A DNA stretch of 64,000 nt, taken from NCBI GenBank assembly GCA_040357565.1, contig JBDODJ010000016.1. One strand, 5' to 3'. The DNA is from Cercozoa sp. M6MM. Its lineage: Eukaryota > Protista > Endomyxa: Ascetosporea. Below the pieces are notes generated by a model. The model had not been told where the DNA came from. It ran no database searches and was given only the letters and a program-made list of their open reading frames with translations. Position numbers and translations under genes: made by a program. Shown here one piece after another: positions 27,188 to 42,398 of this stretch (the first letter of the stretch is position 1; the number at the start of each line of letters is the position of its first letter).

Positions 27188-28888
27188 ATGGGTGTTTGCG
27201 CTTCGCAAACTGCATTCAAAGAGAACAACGTACAGTAGGTTTGTTGCTTGTGCCCCTGACCGTGGTCAGCCTTTGATCTGCGCACAAAAAACACTGACAG
27301 GGTTTGGTGTGGTATAGCGTGAGGTAGCGGCCACGCGCACCGAGAAGCTACTGCTTCTTGGCACGAGTAATTTACACCACTGCTTCCTCGACTTGTCCTC
27401 ACAACAGTGCACTTATTTCGTTCTACCCCTGGTGGCAGGTGAATCAGGCAAGTCGACACTGTTGAAGCAGATGATTTCCCTGTACGGCGAGGGTTTCTCC
27501 GATGAGGATCGCAGACAGTACGTGCATGTCATCTACGGCAACGCTATCGAGGTGCACCTCACCGTGGCAACTGCGCTGTGTTGATACAAGATAAGAACTT
27601 GGTCTGAGAAGAGCATGCTTGAGCTGCTGGCGCAGACCAAAAAGCTGCGCGATGAGTTGGGTATGTAATGCACAACAAATATCGTGTGCCCCTCATTACC
27701 GTTATGTGTGCTGCCGGAATAGAACCTCAGGGCGAGAGCACAGTGGTGTCAGAGGCCAAGGCAACATTGCAAAACGTTATCGCAGCCACCACCGCACAAG
27801 CTTTTGCCGACATTGATCAATCCGAGAAGGAAGCTGTATGAACATCATGCACCCTTTTGTGCTTGGGCGGAGTTGCACTTTGTCGATCCTTGCTGCCTTC
27901 AGGTAGCCAAAGCAATCCGCATACTCTGGGGTGACGAGGGCGTGCAAACGGTGTACGAGCACCGCAGTGAGTTTCAGCTGGTGGACTCGGCCAAGTACTA
28001 CTTCGAGAACATGGATCGCATCGTGCAGCCCACCTATGTGCCCACCATGCAGGTAGTTCTACTGAACATTTTTGACCCGCGTATCTATATCGAACTGCAG
28101 GATGTTCAGCGTGCGCGCACGCGTACGACAGGCTTTGGGGAAACACGGATGCACGCGAACAACACCGATTTCGTTTTGATCGACGTCGGCGGTCTGCGCA
28201 GCGAACGCAAGCGGTTTCCTTTCCATAATTCCACTTCACCTGTTGTATCTGGTTACTTTATCTTGCATGACAGTGGATCCACTGCTTTCAGAATGTTGCG
28301 ACTGTGATTTTTGTGGCTGCTATCAGCGAGTATGACCAAATGCTGTTCGAGGATGAGAAAGCCAACAGACTACATGAGGTAGTGGCTGTTTCGTCCCTCG
28401 AAGCATCTGCTCTATATGCAGCAGGCGTTGCATGTTTTCGACGAGGTCAGCAACTCGCGTTGGTTTCGCAACGCCACGTTGGTTCTGTTCCTCAACAAGC
28501 GCGACTTGTTCGAGGAGAAGATCAAGAGGATACCGCTCACGGTGTGCTTTCCCGAGTTCCCTGGTACGAATACGCCGACCATTTTTCTTTGTTTGTAAAG
28601 TATGCCACTTTCAGTTGTGTAACGGTATAAATGTATCCAGGACCACAACTTGAGTACAATCCGGCAGTGCAGTACATACAGCAGCGATTTGAAGCACTGC
28701 ACCAGGACAAGGTGTTGCTCATTTGTAGATTACGTTAGATTAAACCTTTCCTGAACTATTTGGTGTAGAGCAAGGCCATTTACACGCACGTAATGTGCGC
28801 GCTCGACACCGCCGATGCAGACTTGGCTCGGACATACCGTGCTTTTCTACCGGCATACCGCGAACTCTCCACTTGCCCGCTGCTCTAG
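27188..28888 (+). CDS. Heterotrimeric G protein alpha subunit, atypical (predicted GTPase-deficient), 11 exons
   Basis: MGVCAS lipidation motif, [82 protein letters not shown]; frame open to TAG ending 28888. Confidence 0.95.
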
Positions 28889-29050: not shown

Positions 29051-29167
29051 TAAGTACGGTTGACTATCGTTAAGCCCTTCTAAGTACGGTTGACTATCGT
29101 TAGGCCCTTCTAAGTACGGTTGACTATCGTTACGTCCTTCTAAGTACGGTTGACTATCGTTACGCCC
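29051..29167 (+). repeat. 30-bp tandem repeat, about 4 copies (TAAGTACGGTTGACTATCGTTAVGYCCTTC)
   Basis: Units start at 29051, 29081, 29111 and 29141. Confidence 0.95.
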
Positions 29168-29179
29168 ACGTATGTTAAT

Positions 29180-29768
29180 GTGAGATTGTCAATTTTAGTG
29201 AAGGCAACGATTAAGTAAGAATGTAAGGTCGTTTAATTTAGTGTTCGTTCGACGTCTCAAAAACCGAAAGATAACCGAAGAGAGAAGGTTACCCCAAGGT
29301 AGGGCCGTCGTTACAGTTTAAAGTGTTGAGAGGCTTGTTCGTTGATAAACAAACGAAAACCCTCTTGCCTGCTCAAGATAGAGCAAGTCAGTTGCTTTGG
29401 TCACAGCAGCACCACAGGCGCATGGCTGGACCAACAGTACGGTCTTTTCGCGCCATGTACCCTCGTTCTATGAGGTAGCCAAGTGCGAGCTTGCCGAGCA
29501 CACGTATGCTTGTGTCTTCCTGGAGCTTGCGTGTCGGTACCTGTGTGTCAACAAGCACGGTATCATTTGAGGTACCTGGTATTGGAAAGAGGGCCTTTTT
29601 CCCTTCTTGCAGCAGTTTCGAGCTGCCACCAAACACAAGGTATGCCAAGCTAGGCAGCACTCAATTGCTAGGTTACCAGCTCTCAACCTTAGCAAAACAC
29701 TTCAATTCTAATTTGGCATGACTGATAGTTGTTCCACGCGGAGCGGGCGGTCAGCCGAGTAGGTTGTT
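29180..29768 (-). mobile_element. Repeat family 1 copy, with a 146-bp internal insert, interrupted near its end by the family-2 element
   Basis: Reverse-complement match to 37880-38268, plus a 19/21 match of 29180-29200 to 38410-38430; homology resumes for about 10 bp after 30197. Confidence 0.85.
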
Positions 29769-30197
29769 TGTTACGAAACGGTATTTTCCATCCGGCCGCC
29801 AGTCAGATCTGTCTGAGTTCTGGTGTTCCGCGCGGAAGAAAGCTATTCATTAAGCACTTTGAGAAGTGTGGTGTATTGTGTTTGTCTGACTGAGCCCGAA
29901 AGAGCAAGACTTTGCTCCTTTCCTGAAAAGGCTCTCTACTCACCAGCACAGAGAGCCTTTCTTTTTCTCCTTACGTCCCTCCTTCTCCTTCCTTCCTTCT
30001 TCTGACTGCCGGGCCTCTCTTCCTTCCCGACCAGCTACTTCCTGTACTTTGCCGACCCTATCTTGGGGTAACTACATCACTACATCTACTGACTCAATTC
30101 TTCTCCGCATCGATTCCATTTGTTTCTTTAGCCTTTTTCCTGGCATAGTCCTCTTTTGCACTCCCAAAGCCTCAATTTCTGAAAGGCTGCGGTAACA
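29769..30197 (+). mobile_element. Solo-LTR-like element, family 2, intron-less copy (429 bp)
   Basis: TGTTAC...GTAACA termini, TGTT 4-bp target-site duplication, collinear with the reverse complement of 38641-39183. Confidence 0.88.
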
Positions 30198-30227
30198 TGT
30201 TTGATGTTGATAGCTATGCTAGTCGGT

Positions 30228-34091: not shown

Positions 34092-34186
<95 letters not shown>

Positions 34187-34886
34187 ATAGNNNNNNNNNN
34201 NNNNNNNNNNNNNNNNNNNNNNNNNNNNNNNNNNNNNNNNNNNNNNNNNNNNNNNNNNNNNNNNNNNNNNNNNNNNNNNNNNNNNNNNNNGGGGGGGGGG
34301 TACCGATCGATGCAGCAACAAAACGCAGTGCACTGTCGCTGAAGCCGTTTTGCAGGTAGTCCTCATCGTCACCAACGTAGCTGAAAAATATAACGGTGCA
34401 TCGCGTGTTTATACTAGACAAAGTGAAAGCTACACTCGGAACGGCTTGCGGTAGAACGGACTGTCCTCCTTCGGCACATTATCACCTGCGGTCACATAAA
34501 GAGGCTTAAAAAAAAACAAAATACGACGGACGGATGTTGTACCCGGCAGAATGAGGGAAGAACGAGACGTCTTCGCTGTAGTTTTTTGCGTGAGCGCAGA
34601 GAACACAAGGACCGCCACTTGCAGCAGTATGCTACGCAACTAAATCCTGACAAGGAAGAGGGCAGCAAGGTGGGTACCCAAGCACGTGAGCCACAGTCAC
34701 GGTAAATTTGCGCGGACGGCGGAACCACATCCTCCAGCAGCACGACAGAAACTTGCCGCACGGTCCCTTGCCTGCATGGCACAGAACAAACAACGTCGTA
34801 CTTTTCACCCACCAACTATTTGCAAATAGACCATTGTTGTCTGCATGAGATCGGCCACTCTGCTCTTCGCTAAAGCTAGTGCTCAT
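33085..34886 (-). CDS. Hypothetical protein with acidic Gly/Ala/Phe-rich C-terminus; spans a 100-N gap
   Basis: Starts MSTSFSEEQSGRS; exons DNAFDQQDSPFSVGDLDASDVQGAYGE..., ESEFGGAFGDEHGGAYGI*. Confidence 0.5.
34094..34184 (+). repeat. (CA)n microsatellite next to the gap
   Basis: Seen directly. Confidence 0.97.
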
Positions 34887-35102
34887 TTTGCCCCACTGCG
34901 CAAGAGCACTGAACTATGAGGCTAATCACAGTCCTGCGTCGTTTCAAGGCAGAAGGTGCAGCAGTGCGGTCGCTAGCTGGAACGCCGGTTGCAGACCGAT
35001 CAGAAAAATAAATAAGTGTCCAATCACTGCTTAGCGCAGCTTACTGCGATTATTTGGGTGATACCGACGACAGACACATTGTGACGCACACTCGCAGCAA
35101 CA

Positions 35103-37708
35103 ATGGTATGTATTCTTAAAAATGTGTGGTCCACAATCACATTTTCCTAGTCGTCGCTCGAACTGGTGCGCGAGAAGAAGTTTAGCGACCTCGGCCTGTC
35201 CAAATGTATAAGCGTAGATTCGTTGGATTGTTTTCTCAAGGGACACACAACATATTTAGGGCTCGAAAGGAACTGCGGAATGTTGGGCATGGAACATCCC
35301 TCCAAGATCCAAGATCTGTGCATCCCAGAGGTGCCTTGCTTGGGTTGTGTGCGTGTATGTTGATCACTCGTGAGAAGCGCGTGTTTTCATAGGTTCTCAA
35401 GGGTCGTGATGTCATTGGTCGCTCGCATACAGGCAGTGGTGCAGTCATCATCAGCATGTTGACGCTGTGAGGTAGATCCGTTTTTCTTTAGGCAAGACGG
35501 CGTGTTTCGCACTGCCGCTGCTCCAAAAGCTGAGCGAAGATCCATACGGCGTTTTTGGCGTCGTTCTTGTACTTTTTGTTTCTTTGTTTCTTCGATGATT
35601 GAGAGCTCGGTGTGTGCAGACGCCTGCACGCGAGTTGGCCTTCCAGATTGCTCAGCAGTTTGACGCCTTTGGAAAGTACACAAACGTGCAACCATCCCAA
35701 ATAGTAAGTACCATGTATACCATTGCTGGGTCAGAACCATGAACTGTGACGTTGCTTGTATCACCGGCGGTGGTGACTTCAACAAAGAGGTATGCGCCGA
35801 GTTCGATGATACTCTGTAGTCTATACCTGGGTTTTTAGGCCCGCGCGCTCGAGCAGCGACCGCATGTGATCGTGGCGACGCCGGGCCGATTGGCTGCGCA
35901 CCTGCGCAATGCGACGCCCGAGGAACGGTACCCAGACGTGTTATGAGTTTCCTGCAATTTAACTCGCATACTCAGGGAGGAGTGGTTCGAGTACACGCGC
36001 TTTCTTGTGCTTGACGAAGCTGACCGGTAACGACTTAACTACTCACTGTATGTGCACGTGCACTATACGCCCATGCTTTGAGCAGTCTCCTCGAAGGTGG
36101 CTTCCGCAAGGACCTCGATGTGATTCTCTCTGCCTGTCGCAACTCGCAAGATGGCGAAGAGGACACTGATGACAGCGAGAGGTGCCTTTTTGTACAAACG
36201 TGTTGTGGTGTGAGGATGTGGCTGTGCGTATCACAGACTGCAAGTCTTGTTGTTTTCTGCGACAATGTCGACCACCATGAAGGTTCCTTTACCTCTCAAT
36301 GCACAAATACCCTGCCAGTTGTGTTTGCAGGAGATTGGCGATGTTGCGATGAAGGACGCACTTCTGCTCGAGACGACCAAGCAGGCATCTCTTGACTTCG
36401 TCCTGTGTCCTTTGGGTGATGTTTGTGGTTTGCAGGAAGAGCACGCCACTCCAGACTCGCTGGAACAGACGTACATTTTCGTTCCTCCCAGTACATTTGT
36501 CTTTAGTGTATGCAATGTGCAATCCCACATGCATTCTGTAGAGCTGAAGCTGGCGAACGTGCTAGCTTTGTTGAAGGAACACACAGAAGATTCCGCCATT
36601 CTCTTCGTCAACACGCGAAGGTAGTTGCCATCTCATTACTCCCCTATTTTACACCCAAGTGTCCTGGCAGGAAAGCTGCACTATTGACGGAGACGCTGAG
36701 ACAGTTGGTTAAGGACATGCCCATTAGCGAGAACGACGATGCTGTTCAGACCGCTGAGGGATCGAAGGGCGACTCTGCCGTGTTGGGTGGAATTGAGTCA
36801 CTGCACGGTGGCATGGAGCAGCGCCGACGACTCGCTGCGCTCGGCAAGTTCCGCTGCGGCAAGGCGAGGTGCTTTCTTTCGCAAATTTTTGCCTACCTGA
36901 TGCAAAATGCATTCATTCGCTTACCTTAGAATACTGGTGGCCACCGACGTTGCTGCGCGTGGTCTCGACATTCCTCAAGTTGGTCTTGTTATCAATGTCG
37001 ATGTGCCACGCAAGGCTACGGTACCTTCAAATGACACTGTGTCATCCGCGCTTTGTAACATCTTATGTGCTCCACAGGATTACGTGCATCGAGTTGGTCG
37101 TACTGCTCGTGCAGGAAGGTGTGTTTTGTTCCTGAAAACGTTAAACAAAAACTAGAGCTGATTTGCAGAAAGGGCAAGTCGGTCACTCTGCTGACTCAGT
37201 ACGAAGTCGAACTGTTCCAAGAAGTAGTTTTTTGTTTTTGCTGACATTTTTTTGAAAGCACTTCTGTTTTATTTATGCACAGATGGAAGAGTTGATCGAC
37301 CGCAAGATACAAGAGCACGAGTTTGACCAACATGATGGCGAGGCTATCCTCGACTTGGTGTGTCTCTTGTCATGTCCGTTTCCAGGTGATAACTTTTTTG
37401 ATCAGGTCAAGCCGGTTAACACGGCCGAAAAACTGGCGGCTCTCAACCTTCAGCGCTACGGTAATTCTCATCTCTTCGCATTTTGGACTGGGAGTTTCTG
37501 AATAATATGTTTGATTTCACAGAGATGAAGGAGCAGCAGCGTATGTTCCGTGACACGTACGATGAGACAACACTGCTGACGAAGCGACCTCGTTCTCAAC
37601 AGGTGTGTATCGCTTTTCCATTCTTCGCGTTGGAAATTTGCGTATTGATTTAAACGCAACGTGCTTTCTTAGGTTGATGAGCGCAAGACGAAAAAATCGC
37701 GTAAGTGA
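35103..37708 (+). CDS. DBP8: DEAD-box RNA helicase DBP8/DDX49
   Basis: [25 protein letters not shown] (typical of DBP8), [51 protein letters not shown]. Confidence 0.93.
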
Positions 37709-37869: not shown

Positions 37870-38294
37870 TGTTACTGTAAACATCAAACAACCTACTTGG
37901 CTGACTACTTGCTCCGCGTGGAAGCAACTATCAGTCATGCCAAATAAGAATTGAAGTGTTTGCTAAGGTTGAGAGCTGGTAGCCAAACAATTGAGTGTAG
38001 CCTAGCCGTAGCTTGGCGAGCAGCTCGAAACTGCTGCAAGAATGGAAAAAGGCCCTCTTTCCAATACCAGGTACCTCGAAGGATACCGTGCTTGTTGACC
38101 CAAAGCAACTGACTTGCTCTATCTTGAGCAGGCAAGAGGGTTTTCTTTTGTTTATCATCGAACAAGCCTCTCACCACTTTCAACTGTAACGACGGCCCTA
38201 CCTTGGGTAACCTTCTCTCTTCTGTTATCTTTCGGTTTATTGAGACGTCGAACGAACACGAATTTAAATCTTCATCCGAGAAATAAGAGTAACA
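37870..38294 (+). mobile_element. Solo-LTR-like element, family 1 (about 425 bp; right boundary uncertain)
   Basis: TGTTAC at 37870, GTAACA at 38289-38294, flanks GAGT/CAGT (imperfect TSD); homologous to 29232-29768. Confidence 0.75.
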
Positions 38295-38640
38295 CAGTGG
38301 CAGGTATACCGTCAGCAAGCCGCGGATCTCGTGCAAAACATCGTCTGAGGCCACTACCTCACGCCGAGCTTGCAGCAGACGTAGCCGAATCTGCCCAAGC
38401 CGACAAAGCCACTAAAGCTGACAATCTCACAGTTCGAGAGAGTGAGTTACCCCACCGGTCTAGTTGCGTCAAAGTACTAGTAGACGAAGTTATTACGGCA
38501 CTGCGTTTCTCGTTGTCATCTGACTGCTCGTAAGCGCGGACGATCAAATCTGACCCAGTATGGTTAATAGCGAAGGATTTGTTTTGCTAGGTATCTCCGG
38601 CCTTACATCCTGAGGCTTCGCTTCTACTCGTACTTGCATT

Positions 38641-39183
38641 TGTTACCGCAGCCTTTCAGAAATTGAGGCTTTGGTAGTGCAAAAGAGTACTATGCCAGGA
38701 AAAAGACTAAAGAAAACAAATGGAATCGATGTGAAGAAGAATTGAGTCAGTAGACGTAGTCAGTTCAGAGGTAGTTACCCCAAGATAGGGTCGGCAAAGT
38801 ACAGGAAGTAGACTGGTCGGGAAGGAAGAGAGGCCCGGTAGTCAGAAGAAGGAAGGAAGGAGAAGGAGGGACGTAAGGAGAATAAGAAAGGCTCTCTGTG
38901 CTGGGAAGACAGCAACAAGGGATTCCGTGAGAGTGCAAGGGCTGGAGCCTGGAGAGGTGCTTTACCTGGTGAGTAGAGAGCCTTTCAGGAAAGGAGCAAA
39001 ATCTTGCTCTTTTGAGGTCAGTCTACCAAACACAGGGTAAGGAGGTTAGCAACACTCTCGGAGAGGTCAGGGTACCAGACAAACACAATACACCACACTT
39101 CTCAAAGTACACAATAAATAGCTTTCTTCCACGCGGAGCACCAGAGATCTGACTGGCCGGATGGAAAATGCCGTTTCGTAACA
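38641..39183 (-). mobile_element. Solo-LTR-like element, family 2, intron-containing copy (543 bp)
   Basis: TGTTAC...GTAACA termini, CATT 4-bp TSD; contains minus-strand GT-AG segments at 39023-39075 and 38901-38965 that are absent from the 29769 copy. Confidence 0.9.
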
Positions 39184-39423
39184 CATTGCTAAGTGTTGTG
39201 CAGATCTGACTTTAGAGCTTGGGTCAAGCTTTCTACTGCTCACGATCTCTTCTGCGGAGCAGCGAACTGCTCACAGTAAACAGTACAGTACGTAGTCCAG
39301 TGCTGGCACTGTACAAGGAAAAGAGCTTAATATGTCTGTTCACAATCAGTTTTGTAGCCACTATTCAAAGAACGCGGTCGAAAGAACGTATGATACAACT
39401 CCCGTAGGTCCCGTTCATTTCGT

Positions 39424-40301
39424 TTACGTCAGAAGTAAGTTGAAGAGCGAGTCAGCGGAGCTGGAGGCGCCGGCCCTGTGTGATACCACGTAGATGCAAG
39501 TCCAACTCATTAAATTAGAGTTTACGGTGGGGTCGTGGCGGTTGTGGCGATACGTGATATGAGTGCGCGCGTCCAGTTTGTGGTCTAAATTTACACACCA
39601 AAAAGTTGCCTTCAATACACGCTTCGGTACTACAGAGCAGGGCACGTGTGCGATGGCAGTGGCGAGCGCGCTAGATGTCACATACACACGCGCACTGAGC
39701 GAACAAAGAAACAAGACTGTGTGCTGGGTAAATTTACAAGGCGGCGGCGGTGGTCGGAAACGACTGGGCGAGGGCGGCGTGACATCACCGGACTAGACCG
39801 ATAAGAAGATAAAGGTCTGCAGCATTTTCTGTACAATATCTGAAGGGTACGGCAGGACGACGTCCGCGTGGAGGGGGTCTTGGTAGCGATGACTAAACAC
39901 ACGTACAGTGCAACGTTAAAAGAATCGGTATCATTATACGTACCAAGATATCATCGATGGTTTCAACTGGTGCTGGCGGAACCGGCTTCTTCCTGGCCTA
40001 TAAATCAATGACGAAAAGCTGGAGTATGGAAGGAAGGCAACACGAAAAGGCTACAGGAGGCGGCGGCACAGCACGATGCTGCGTGCTGAGACTCACGCTG
40101 CGCTGCAGCAGCGGCGAAGGCGCGCGAGGCGACGGAGTGCCCAACGGTGTCGTTGCTGACGCTGTCGCTGACGAAGACTGCTCCAGCAACGAGAGTGCCT
40201 CGTCGATGTGTTGAAACACAAAGGTCACGGCGTCGCCTTCCTCCTTCATACCTTGCATCGACGCCAGCTGGTTGTCTGCACACACACAAACACACAAACA
40301 C

Positions 40302-40348
<47 letters not shown>

Positions 40349-42398
40349 CACACACACCATTAGCCTATACTCTTTCTGCCCACTCTATAAGAAAAGTACC
40401 AGAGGCCGACCGCAGCATGGCAGGCGCCAAACAAACACTGAGATTACGCGGCGCCATCTTGGTCGCCGCCAGACACTCTAGGTACCCAAGGACAAGTCAA
40501 ATGAACAGGTCCAAAGGTCCAACAGATAGGTCAAGTGGACAAACTGCAAAATGGACTACCAGGTGACAGGAGACACTGCACGAACAGCAGCAGTTCGCGC
40601 AGCGTGGCCTTGTGCGTCGCACTTCGTGTCTGTCGCAACGCCTCGGCAAAACCGTCGAGTGTCTGCGAGAGAAGGTTCAACGTGCCAACAGTGCGAGATT
40701 AGAGTGAGTGAACCTGCTCAGTGGCCACGCGGCAGAAGGCATTGCGTGCGTCGAACGGCACCAGCGGCACTGGTAGGCCGCGCAGCCACTCCTTCAACAA
40801 GGCGGCGCACGTGTGCGGCGACGTCAATTTCGCGTCGCTTTCGATCGCATAGTCACCTTCTGCCAGCTGCGCACCGCGAAGAGATACAATCTTAAGATAA
40901 AGACAGAGGGAAAGCAACCTTGCGTCGCAGGTACTTGAGGTCGGAAGCACCGGCCGAGAGTCGAAAGATACCCTCGGTGTGATGTCCGTCGAGGTGCTTG
41001 ATTCCGGAAATCAAACGTGTCACCAGCAGCGGCACATACGGCACGTCAGGTCGGCTGTTCTCTCTGTCGTCAGAAGAAGTGACATTGGTATCACAAGGAG
41101 GTAACACGCAAGGTAAAAGGTACGGCAGTGACACGACGTCATCCAATGATGACCGAAACAGTGCACTCGACAGTTCCGGAGGTAGACCCCAGTCTGCCTC
41201 GCCTTCCTGTCAAACAGACTTAGGAGGACCATTCCACAGCAAAGTATTCGACGCACCTCGAGTGCGGCAGCAGCAGCGGCGTGTGACTTCTGCTGCTGCG
41301 TCAGAAAGAGCGCCACTCGCTTGCGCAAAGCTACAAAATTAGACAGGTACAACTCCGATGTACTGGCGTACAACAGAAAAAAGAAAGATAGAGAGGTGAT
41401 ACTCAAATTGTACTCGTCGCGCAGCTCCGTCACAGCCGTGATGAACTCTTTTTGCGCAGCCTCGTAGGCGTCCAGTGCCTAGACAACCAAGTTACTTGTA
41501 CTGAGGAAGTAGGCCAAGTACAGTACCTGGCGTTTCTCATACGCAAGTGCAACTTTTGCAACGGCATCGTCGTACTCTGCGCGTGACCAATACATAGTGC
41601 ACAGTCACAAATGCAGTCTAGCCATCGACGGAGTACGCAGGTGCGTCGTGTCCAACTTGCGTCGGAGTGCCTTGGAACGCTTGATAGATTGCTCGTACAT
41701 TGACAGCGGCACTAGCACCTACAGCACACACAAAGTCTAAAAAGGAGCGAGCAAAGACAAAAGGCGCACCTCGTTTTGGAACTGTTCAAGCAACTCGTTG
41801 ATCGCCGTGTCGGTCACAGTGCGCATGCCAGCTGCAGGAGAACGAGGGCCGGGGTAAATAGAGGGGCACACACAAGATGAGTGTACACTCGGTAGCATTC
41901 AACGGTGGCGGCAACGACGAACTGTTAAACACATATTAGCTGCACGGAGAAACTGCTGTAAAGAGAATCGGTACAACATGCTGCAGAGGTCCTGGCCAAC
42001 TTTCAACGTTCGACGCAGCTGCGCCTCAAACGCCTTGGCTGCAGTGTCGTATACATGTGTATTATAAGAAACAACCATATCTTCAGTACCCTTGGCCAGA
42101 ACGCCATCAAAGTTCTCCACCGCCGCTTCAAGCACAGTCTGCCAAAAGTCTTATACACGACACGACACGAATACCTCAGGATAGAGGCGAGGCACCTTCA
42201 ATTGCGATATCTCGGGTGAGTCTTGACTGCCTTCGCGGCGCCCGGTCTTCTGCAACGCCTGTTGCCGCCAGGCTTTGCTCTGAAGCACACCATGAGGGAA
42301 ACAATAATACTTCACAGCTATCAAAACGGTCCGAGCCCGGCAGCAGCTTGACCACATCGACTCACCTTAGCTTTGAACGAGGCCTTGAACGAGCTCAT
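39424..42398 (-). CDS. BAR-domain + RhoGAP protein with proline-rich tail
   Basis: RhoGAP motifs VPLLV, EGIFRLSAG (arginine finger), AALLKEWLRGLPVPLVP, TKMAPRNLSVCLAPAML; N-terminal helical BAR-like region; 3' end approximate. Confidence 0.85.

Follow-up and report, generated by a model that had tools for sequence, protein, structure and literature searches.

Long terminal repeats (LTRs) are commonly regarded as modules that supply a promoter and a terminator and contain no introns. The locus described here raises the question of how one LTR can be present in a genome in two forms, one of which lacks, with exact borders, segments that resemble spliceosomal introns of the host. The window, the whole stretch of 64,000 nucleotides of Cercozoa sp. 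M6MM DNA that we analysed, corresponds to C16:62001-126000 in an assembly of 23.6 Mb and 2235 contigs that was searched in full. It holds a long and a short copy of the same LTR, and the differences between them are small indels and two large gaps of 53 nt and 65 nt. When rechecked against the letters of the window, the coordinates, ends, separate TSDs and both gaps reported in the original prediction were reproduced, as was the exact read-through of the short copy at 29888/29889 and 29946/29947. The features of the two copies are as follows.

38641-39183, minus strand: long solo LTR, 543 nt, termini TGTTAC...GTAACA, all three intron-like segments present (self match 100 %)
39184-39187, minus strand: upstream TSD of the long copy, AATG on the element strand (CATT on the plus strand)
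38637-38640, minus strand: downstream TSD of the long copy, AATG on the element strand
29769-30197, plus strand: short solo LTR, 429 nt, termini TGTTAC...GTAACA, without candidate introns 1 and 2, candidate intron 3 kept (30068-30131/30148)
29765-29768, plus strand: upstream TSD of the short copy, TGTT
30198-30201, plus strand: downstream TSD of the short copy, TGTT
29888-29889, plus strand: exon-exon type junction 1 of the short copy, TTTGTCTG/ACTGA
29946-29947, plus strand: exon-exon type junction 2 of the short copy, CTCACCAG/CACAGAG

Both window LTRs have a member of another repeat family, unrelated to them, as a neighbour (29293-29696, plus strand, and 37959-38207, minus strand). The order of repeat and LTR differs between the two loci, and both are therefore small nests of independent insertions rather than one inverted duplication.

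Both window copies are solo LTRs of one Ty3/gypsy-type LTR retrotransposon family whose element is about 6.9 kb long. Searching the assembly with the long copy gave about 90 candidate matches, of which 40 were scored and about half inspected base by base; copies on C934, C1704, C718, C27, C818, C5, C830 and others were scored by junction k-mers or alignment coordinates only. In this genome search the long window LTR is 95-98 % identical to more than 15 other full-length LTR copies, and most copies of the family, the two in the window included, are solo LTRs. Perfect 4-bp TSDs flank 25 of the 30 complete copies that were read. Four of the five exceptions abut a PBS or a PPT (PBS-like on C414 and C858, PPT on C107 and C2), in keeping with LTRs that belong to full elements; the fifth matches at 3 of 4 nt.

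The LTR nature of the element, proposed originally from its ends and TSDs, is borne out on other contigs, where direct LTRs flank a PBS-like site, a PPT and an ORF encoding RT, RNase H and integrase. The PBS-like sequence AAT-TGGTACGAGATCC... directly follows the 5' LTRs and begins with TGG three nt past the LTR; it continues as AAT-TGGTACGAG... after the 5' LTRs of C414, C858 and C1194, and AAT-TGGTACGAGATCCGAGG adjoins the LTR on these three contigs and on C107. A search for a tRNA matching this site found none, and the LTR itself contains no self-priming complement of 7 nt or more. The 14-nt PBS word also occurs at C314:11682, C394:7179, C793:5319 and C989:596 without the LTR junction k-mers of this family, and these four sites probably belong to other LTR families using the same primer tRNA.

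At the other end, the polypurine tract GGGGAGGCAGGA abuts the 3' LTR on C107 (L022/L041) and C2 (L034). C107 encodes an uninterrupted ORF of 1948 aa that ends 18 nt before the 3' LTR and has Pfam matches to RVT_1 (1020-1157), RT_RNaseH (1222-1349), Integrase_H2C2 (1499-1557) and rve (1573-1669), that is, RT, RNase H and integrase in the Ty3/gypsy order. No Pfam match to gag, protease or a chromodomain was found in this ORF, whose N-terminal region is partly an N gap. Downstream of the 5' LTR, the internal sequences of C414 and C1194 are 98-99 % identical to that of C107. The best relatives of the pol protein in a protein database search are 28-38 % identical, with none above 38 %. An Atlas search returned generic Ty3/gypsy clusters only, most often and weakly from Basidiomycota, and a metagenome scan gave no match to the LTR 5' end.

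We then consider the segments that distinguish the two forms, which in the long window copy are placed as follows.

39023-39075, minus strand: candidate LTR intron 1, 53 nt, CTG/GTACCC...GCTAAC...TTTGGTAG/A; missing from all short copies
38901-38965, minus strand: candidate LTR intron 2, 65 nt, CAG/GTAAAG...CTCAC...CTGTCTTCCCAG/C; missing from all short copies, always together with intron 1
38707-38778, minus strand: candidate LTR intron 3 with proximal acceptor, 72 nt in the window copy, GGG/GTAACT...CTGAC...TTTGTTTTCTTTAG/T; precisely missing on C8 and C342
38690-38778, minus strand: candidate LTR intron 3 with distal acceptor, 89 nt in the window copy, same donor, acceptor GGCATAG/T; precisely missing in the C107 3' LTR

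All of these segments lie on the gag-pol sense strand. The acceptor end is GGTAG for intron 1, TCTTCCCAG for intron 2 and TTTCTTTAG or GGCATAG for intron 3, and the acceptors are preceded by a pyrimidine tract and a branch-like motif (CTAAC, CTCAC and CTGAC, respectively); in intron 3, CTGAC motifs and a T-rich tract lie ahead of the proximal acceptor. Intron 3, which is new relative to the original prediction, combines one donor at LTR position 406 with two alternative AG acceptors, and the C107 3' LTR that lacks it up to the distal acceptor is part of the element with the uninterrupted 1948-aa ORF. A different third intron, suggested earlier at about 29975-30034 and thought to be retained in both window copies, is not upheld, as no copy lacks that interval.

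In an alignment of 36 LTR copies, the short copies all lack segments 1 and 2 with identical borders and the long copies all have both. The border ambiguity is 1 nt for segment 1, the same microhomology as first described for the 53-nt junction, and 4 nt (CCAG) for segment 2. GT...AG phasing on the sense strand is possible for both, which for two random deletions has a chance of (2/256)x(5/256), about 1.5e-4. The aligned full-length copies show four large internal deletions, each of which can be phased as GT...AG on the sense strand. The joint chance of this is about 1e-8 (2, 5, 2 and 2 phasings at 1/256 each, given uniform borders), and two of the four have a common donor and a different AG acceptor. 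Other indels in the family are at most 12 nt long or are end truncations. These results support an LTR with three putative introns of the spliceosomal type that would be spliceable, and we infer that they are spliced at the RNA level.

Exon 1 and intron 1 end in nearly identical stretches of 12 nt (TGTGTTTGTCTG, 39076-39087, and TGTGTTTGGTAG, 39023-39034, respectively, both minus strand), which caused overlapping BLAST hits. This near-repeat could be a trace of the origin of intron 1 by partial duplication.

For comparison with host introns, we used the G-alpha gene at 27341-28800 (plus strand) of the window, which contains at least seven very short introns. Seven of its exon junctions were located by conserved peptide anchors, six phased and one not; the six phased introns measure 43-77 nt and some have no in-frame stop. 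The LTR segments, at 53-89 nt, fit this small sample (n = 6), in line with their earlier description as host-sized. The G-alpha donors are variable (GTAATT, GTGCAC, GTAGTT, GTAGTG, GTACGA, GTGTTG), and the GTACCC donor of LTR intron 1 is not odd among them. With host 5' splice sites degenerate beyond GT, GT-AG alone is a looser criterion here than in many genomes. At the P-loop of G-alpha the sole frame-compatible splice yields ...LLLLGTSESGKST. The exons of the host are very short, with no more than two ORFs of at least 300 codons in the 64 kb, and the seven longest ORFs of the window have no Pfam match.

To count the two forms genome-wide, junction k-mers taken from the sequences were run across the assembly. 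Spliced junctions 1 and 2 are each found in 12 clear copies, in the same LTRs wherever both can be scored; hits with 2 mismatches on C74, C461 and C56 stand outside these 12. Unspliced junction 1 is found in about 33 copies and unspliced junction 2 in about 29. The tabulation by intron content that the original prediction had proposed separates two classes with constant borders. Intron 3 is removed at the proximal acceptor in 2 copies and at the distal acceptor in 1, and its unspliced donor is present in about 45-50 copies, all short copies included. In total, spliced-derived copies number about 12-15 among roughly 50 LTRs, or between about a quarter and a third of them. The junction k-mer counts reveal no copy in a mixed state, with only intron 1 or only intron 2 removed, and none without all three introns; an exon-2-skipped junction is absent genome-wide. 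Those complete short copies that were examined have their own TSDs. At C547:1556 and C1513:1803, a common variant follows the intron 1 donor for 10 nt (TGTGTTTGTCTGGTACCCTG) and then diverges (TG...).

Several contigs (C1194:1, C107:1, C367 end, C324 end) start or stop inside the LTR exactly at the variant borders. The first base of C1194 is LTR position 280, immediately behind intron 2, and that of C107 is at about position 497, immediately past the distal acceptor of intron 3. Divergence of the spliced and unspliced forms probably causes a fork in the assembly graph at these points, and the assembly may have collapsed full-length copies of either type. An element with two short LTRs is not seen in the assembly, which breaks inside the elements. 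On C2, a short LTR remains joined to the PPT and to the final 310 bp of internal sequence (the pol 3' end), from which it follows that short LTRs were formerly parts of whole elements.

Which of the two forms came first can be read from distant relatives of the LTR. The intron segments are kept in a long copy at 85 % identity (L026) and in two LTRs on C324 at about 72 %, and they are conserved at least as well as the flanking LTR parts (82-83 % identity for intron 2, 72 % for the 5' part). The presence of the segments in LTRs this divergent makes the long form ancestral and the short forms products of loss. A phylogenetic check of polarity, proposed with the original prediction, leads to the same result, with short copies nested within the diversity of long ones. 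Loss rather than gain is therefore the supported direction of change.

Whether this loss occurred once or many times was addressed with a maximum-likelihood tree built with the intron columns removed, the short group having been fixed before the tree was seen. In this tree the short copies are dispersed among the long ones, which requires 8 changes of state, and forcing the short copies into one clade is worse by 50.6 log-likelihood units (AU p=0.0011); informative sites are few and support is low on most branches. For all 10 complete short copies, the nearest copy is a long one and not another short one. On C9, the short copy has the 17C marker and 414C of a young long subgroup (L003/L004/L005/L016), and the one on C770 matches L006 at 14C and 63T and L015 at 63T and 530G, so that both carry long-subgroup markers on both sides of the deleted region. 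The short copy C16:34911 has an insertion downstream of the introns in common with the long copy L023 (99/95 support), and other short copies have a 9-nt U3 insertion typical of older long copies. The two losses of intron 3 at the proximal acceptor, on C8 and C342, are on different U3 haplotypes. There is no short-only clade larger than a possible pair.

The simplest reading that these data suggest is one of recurrent insertions derived from spliced RNA. Recurrent, border-identical loss on several LTR haplotypes fits propagation through both spliced and unspliced RNA, a proposal of the original prediction that gains from the further intron with alternative 3' splice sites. The lack of an expanding short-only clade suggests, without proving it, that elements with short LTRs propagate poorly. 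Overall, we consider it very probable that a Ty3/gypsy-type element with a three-intron LTR gave rise to the short copies by repeated insertion of spliced RNA.

One explanation that would remove RNA from the picture makes the family a non-LTR element, for instance a MITE bounded by terminal inverted repeats, with indels that have nothing to do with RNA. The 6-bp terminal inverted repeat TGTTAC/GTAACA and the isolation of most copies as units of about 0.5 kb are what such an element would look like, but TG...CA ends with a 4-bp TSD are a typical integrase product, and direct repeats of the unit stand on either side of a PBS-like site, a PPT and an RT-RNaseH-integrase ORF; we rejected this candidate and give it practically no chance. 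DNA-level deletion by replication slippage or microhomology end joining, coinciding with GT...AG, could draw on the 4-nt microhomology (CCAG) at the borders of intron 2 and on the near-repeat of TGTGTTTGTCTG and TGTGTTTGGTAG at the ends of exon 1 and intron 1. Recombination between the near-repeats would, however, leave ...TGTGTTTGGTAG-ACTGA, which is not what is seen. Such deletions would also have had to hit GT...AG on the sense strand four times independently, to recur with identical borders on different haplotypes and to use one donor with two different AG acceptors, in a family whose other indels are small or terminal, and we regard this as very improbable. An ancestral short LTR into which two or three introns were inserted, the gain that the original prediction had kept as its alternative, would agree with the young, homogeneous burst at 95-98 % identity among the long copies. 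The same segments in the relatives at 85 % and 72 % identity, together with short copies that nest inside rather than outside the long-copy diversity, leave this scenario hardly any probability.

It is more conceivable, although in our view still unlikely, that splicing made the short LTR once and that the short lineage then spread, with gene conversion, or template switching between co-packaged short and long RNAs as they are reverse-transcribed, moving the deletion to other haplotypes. Retroelement reverse transcriptases are known for frequent template switching, the loss of intron 1 always goes with that of intron 2, the tree is poorly supported on most of its branches, and the short window copy and C16:40293 have private 3' variants in common at positions 450/452. 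A single origin is nevertheless at odds with the AU test against one clade, with the proximity of every short copy to a long one and with at least two short copies (C9 and C770) that have markers of the same subgroup on both sides of the deletion. The losses of intron 3, on different haplotypes and with two acceptors, would in any case call for repeated splicing-derived insertion. Whether there was one event or many, the origin of the short LTRs appears to lie at the RNA level.

For the recurrent insertion of spliced RNA, we propose the following course. When an LTR element replicates, both new LTRs receive their U3 from the 3' end of the RNA and their R-U5 from its 5' end. The full-length RNA of the element would usually be reverse-transcribed unspliced, and sometimes RNA without the LTR introns would be reverse-transcribed and integrated. 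A spliced template would yield an element with two shortened LTRs and with PBS, gag-pol and PPT intact, and spliced forms could for that reason integrate with normal TSDs. Later recombination between the two LTRs would leave a short solo LTR with its own TSD. The process would have been repeated from different source sub-lineages, and the short-LTR progeny seemingly propagated little or not at all.

The position of the introns relative to the transcription start may be approached from the LTR sequence. A TATTTAT box upstream of intron 1, which had been taken to place the introns in R/U5, is present in only 2 aligned copies, and the consensus is TATTCAT, so the box no longer serves this purpose. 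The sense strand of the whole LTR is free of ATG (3.15 expected, P(0)=0.027), and gag-pol opens at the first ATG, which lies 92 nt past the LTR. This speaks weakly for a long 5' leader. On the other hand, a CT-rich tract at about 300-370 might just as well indicate a promoter, and introns 1 and 2 would then be in U3.

It is tempting to ask whether the introns work in the life cycle of the element. Unspliced RNA could be the packaged genome and spliced RNA the message, with cis signals for propagation (promoter, enhancer, packaging) inside the introns and spliced insertions dead on arrival; this is a tentative idea, which we would sooner doubt than accept. If true, LTR retrotransposons would have their own equivalent of the retroviral 'packaging signal in the intron' logic and of the L1 SpIREs, and the short copies would form a natural fossil series, with alternative 3' splice-site use included.

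The family shares with fungal and protist Ty3/gypsy elements (Metaviridae) TG...CA LTRs, a 4-bp TSD, a PBS-like site that starts with TGG three nt past the 5' LTR, a PPT, a single gag-pol ORF, the RT-RNaseH-integrase order and many solo LTRs. It differs from them in the three intron-like segments of its LTR, in an LTR length that is di- or trimorphic at exact GT-AG borders and in a pol protein without a close database relative (best 28-38 % identity).

Among known systems, the closest likeness is with the LINE-1 SpIREs, which are retrotransposed from RNA spliced within the 5'UTR, lose promoter activity and usually prove to be evolutionary dead ends (Larson et al. 2018, PMC5860796). Both are genomic copies that come, or in M6MM would come, from RNA spliced in its own non-coding control region, and both appear as scattered copies without a thriving lineage. 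The SpIRE-like trait is present here as 12 clear copies that lack exact donor-to-acceptor intervals, with TSDs of their own in the complete copies examined, and as three copies without intron 3. L1 is, in contrast, a non-LTR element that uses target-primed reverse transcription and is spliced in the 5'UTR only, whereas the M6MM splices would fall inside the LTR and be copied to both ends; spliced-derived copies are also common in the M6MM family (about 12-15 of roughly 50 LTRs).

Our literature search on introns inside LTRs found only one claim of first evidence, a 2026 preprint on maize and at the RNA level, and no report of integrated, spliced LTR variants. Maize LTR retrotransposons produce spliced LTR-contained transcripts, described by the authors as the first evidence of introns in LTRs; the evidence consists of long-read transcripts with introns averaging about 1.3 kb and lncRNA-like products, and integrated spliced LTR copies are not reported (bioRxiv 10.64898/2026.05.08.723830). 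Canonical introns inside LTRs, putative in M6MM, are common to both cases, with DNA-level evidence alone and introns of 53-89 nt in M6MM as opposed to RNA-level evidence and about 1.3 kb in maize.

In HTLV and foamy virus, a splice donor is located in R. In Ogre and EVADE/copia, introns lie in the internal region (PMC12786077). In all of these the host spliceosome acts on the genomic transcript, as it would in M6MM, and splicing yields subgenomic mRNAs without coding sequence in the Ogre, EVADE and retroviral cases. They differ in that the M6MM introns would lie entirely within the LTR, with gag-pol, PBS and PPT spared by splicing. In the classic experiment of Boeke et al. 1985, as recounted in the same source, an artificial intron in the internal region of Ty1 was lost precisely on transposition (PMC12786077). 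Exact intron loss is the signature of an RNA intermediate in both systems, but the putative introns of M6MM are natural and inside the LTR. As possible host context by analogy, inefficiently spliced introns in Cryptococcus, mainly in DNA-transposase transcripts, have been linked to RNAi, according to a review (PMC7175516).

In the M6MM genome the outcome appears to be recorded as three GT-AG intervals removed repeatedly from integrated copies, alternative acceptor included. This would be a natural version of the classic intron-loss proof of retrotransposition and would provide a measure, from sequence only, of how often spliced and unspliced RNA are reverse-transcribed. Long and short LTRs could also be used as an assay system to learn if an LTR element of an intron-dense genome is disabled or regulated by splicing. 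Length variants of LTRs that are bounded by GT-AG may be overlooked by repeat annotators or mis-split into separate families.

Two more short LTRs are located upstream of the window on C16, at 34911-35345 and 40293-40723 (L031), in the same orientation and 5.4 kb apart. They lie 27 kb and 21 kb upstream of the window and have the TSDs AATT and ATTT; C16 thus carries three spliced-type solo LTRs within about 57 kb, the window copy included. The pair was considered as one full-length short element and rejected, given the separate TSDs and the absence of gag-pol in the intervening DNA. Within the window, a 30-nt tandem repeat of about 4 copies lies at 29051-29197, just upstream of the nest that contains the short LTR, and long (CA)n microsatellites occupy 34095-34190 and 40279-40357, the first of which adjoins an N run (assembly gap).
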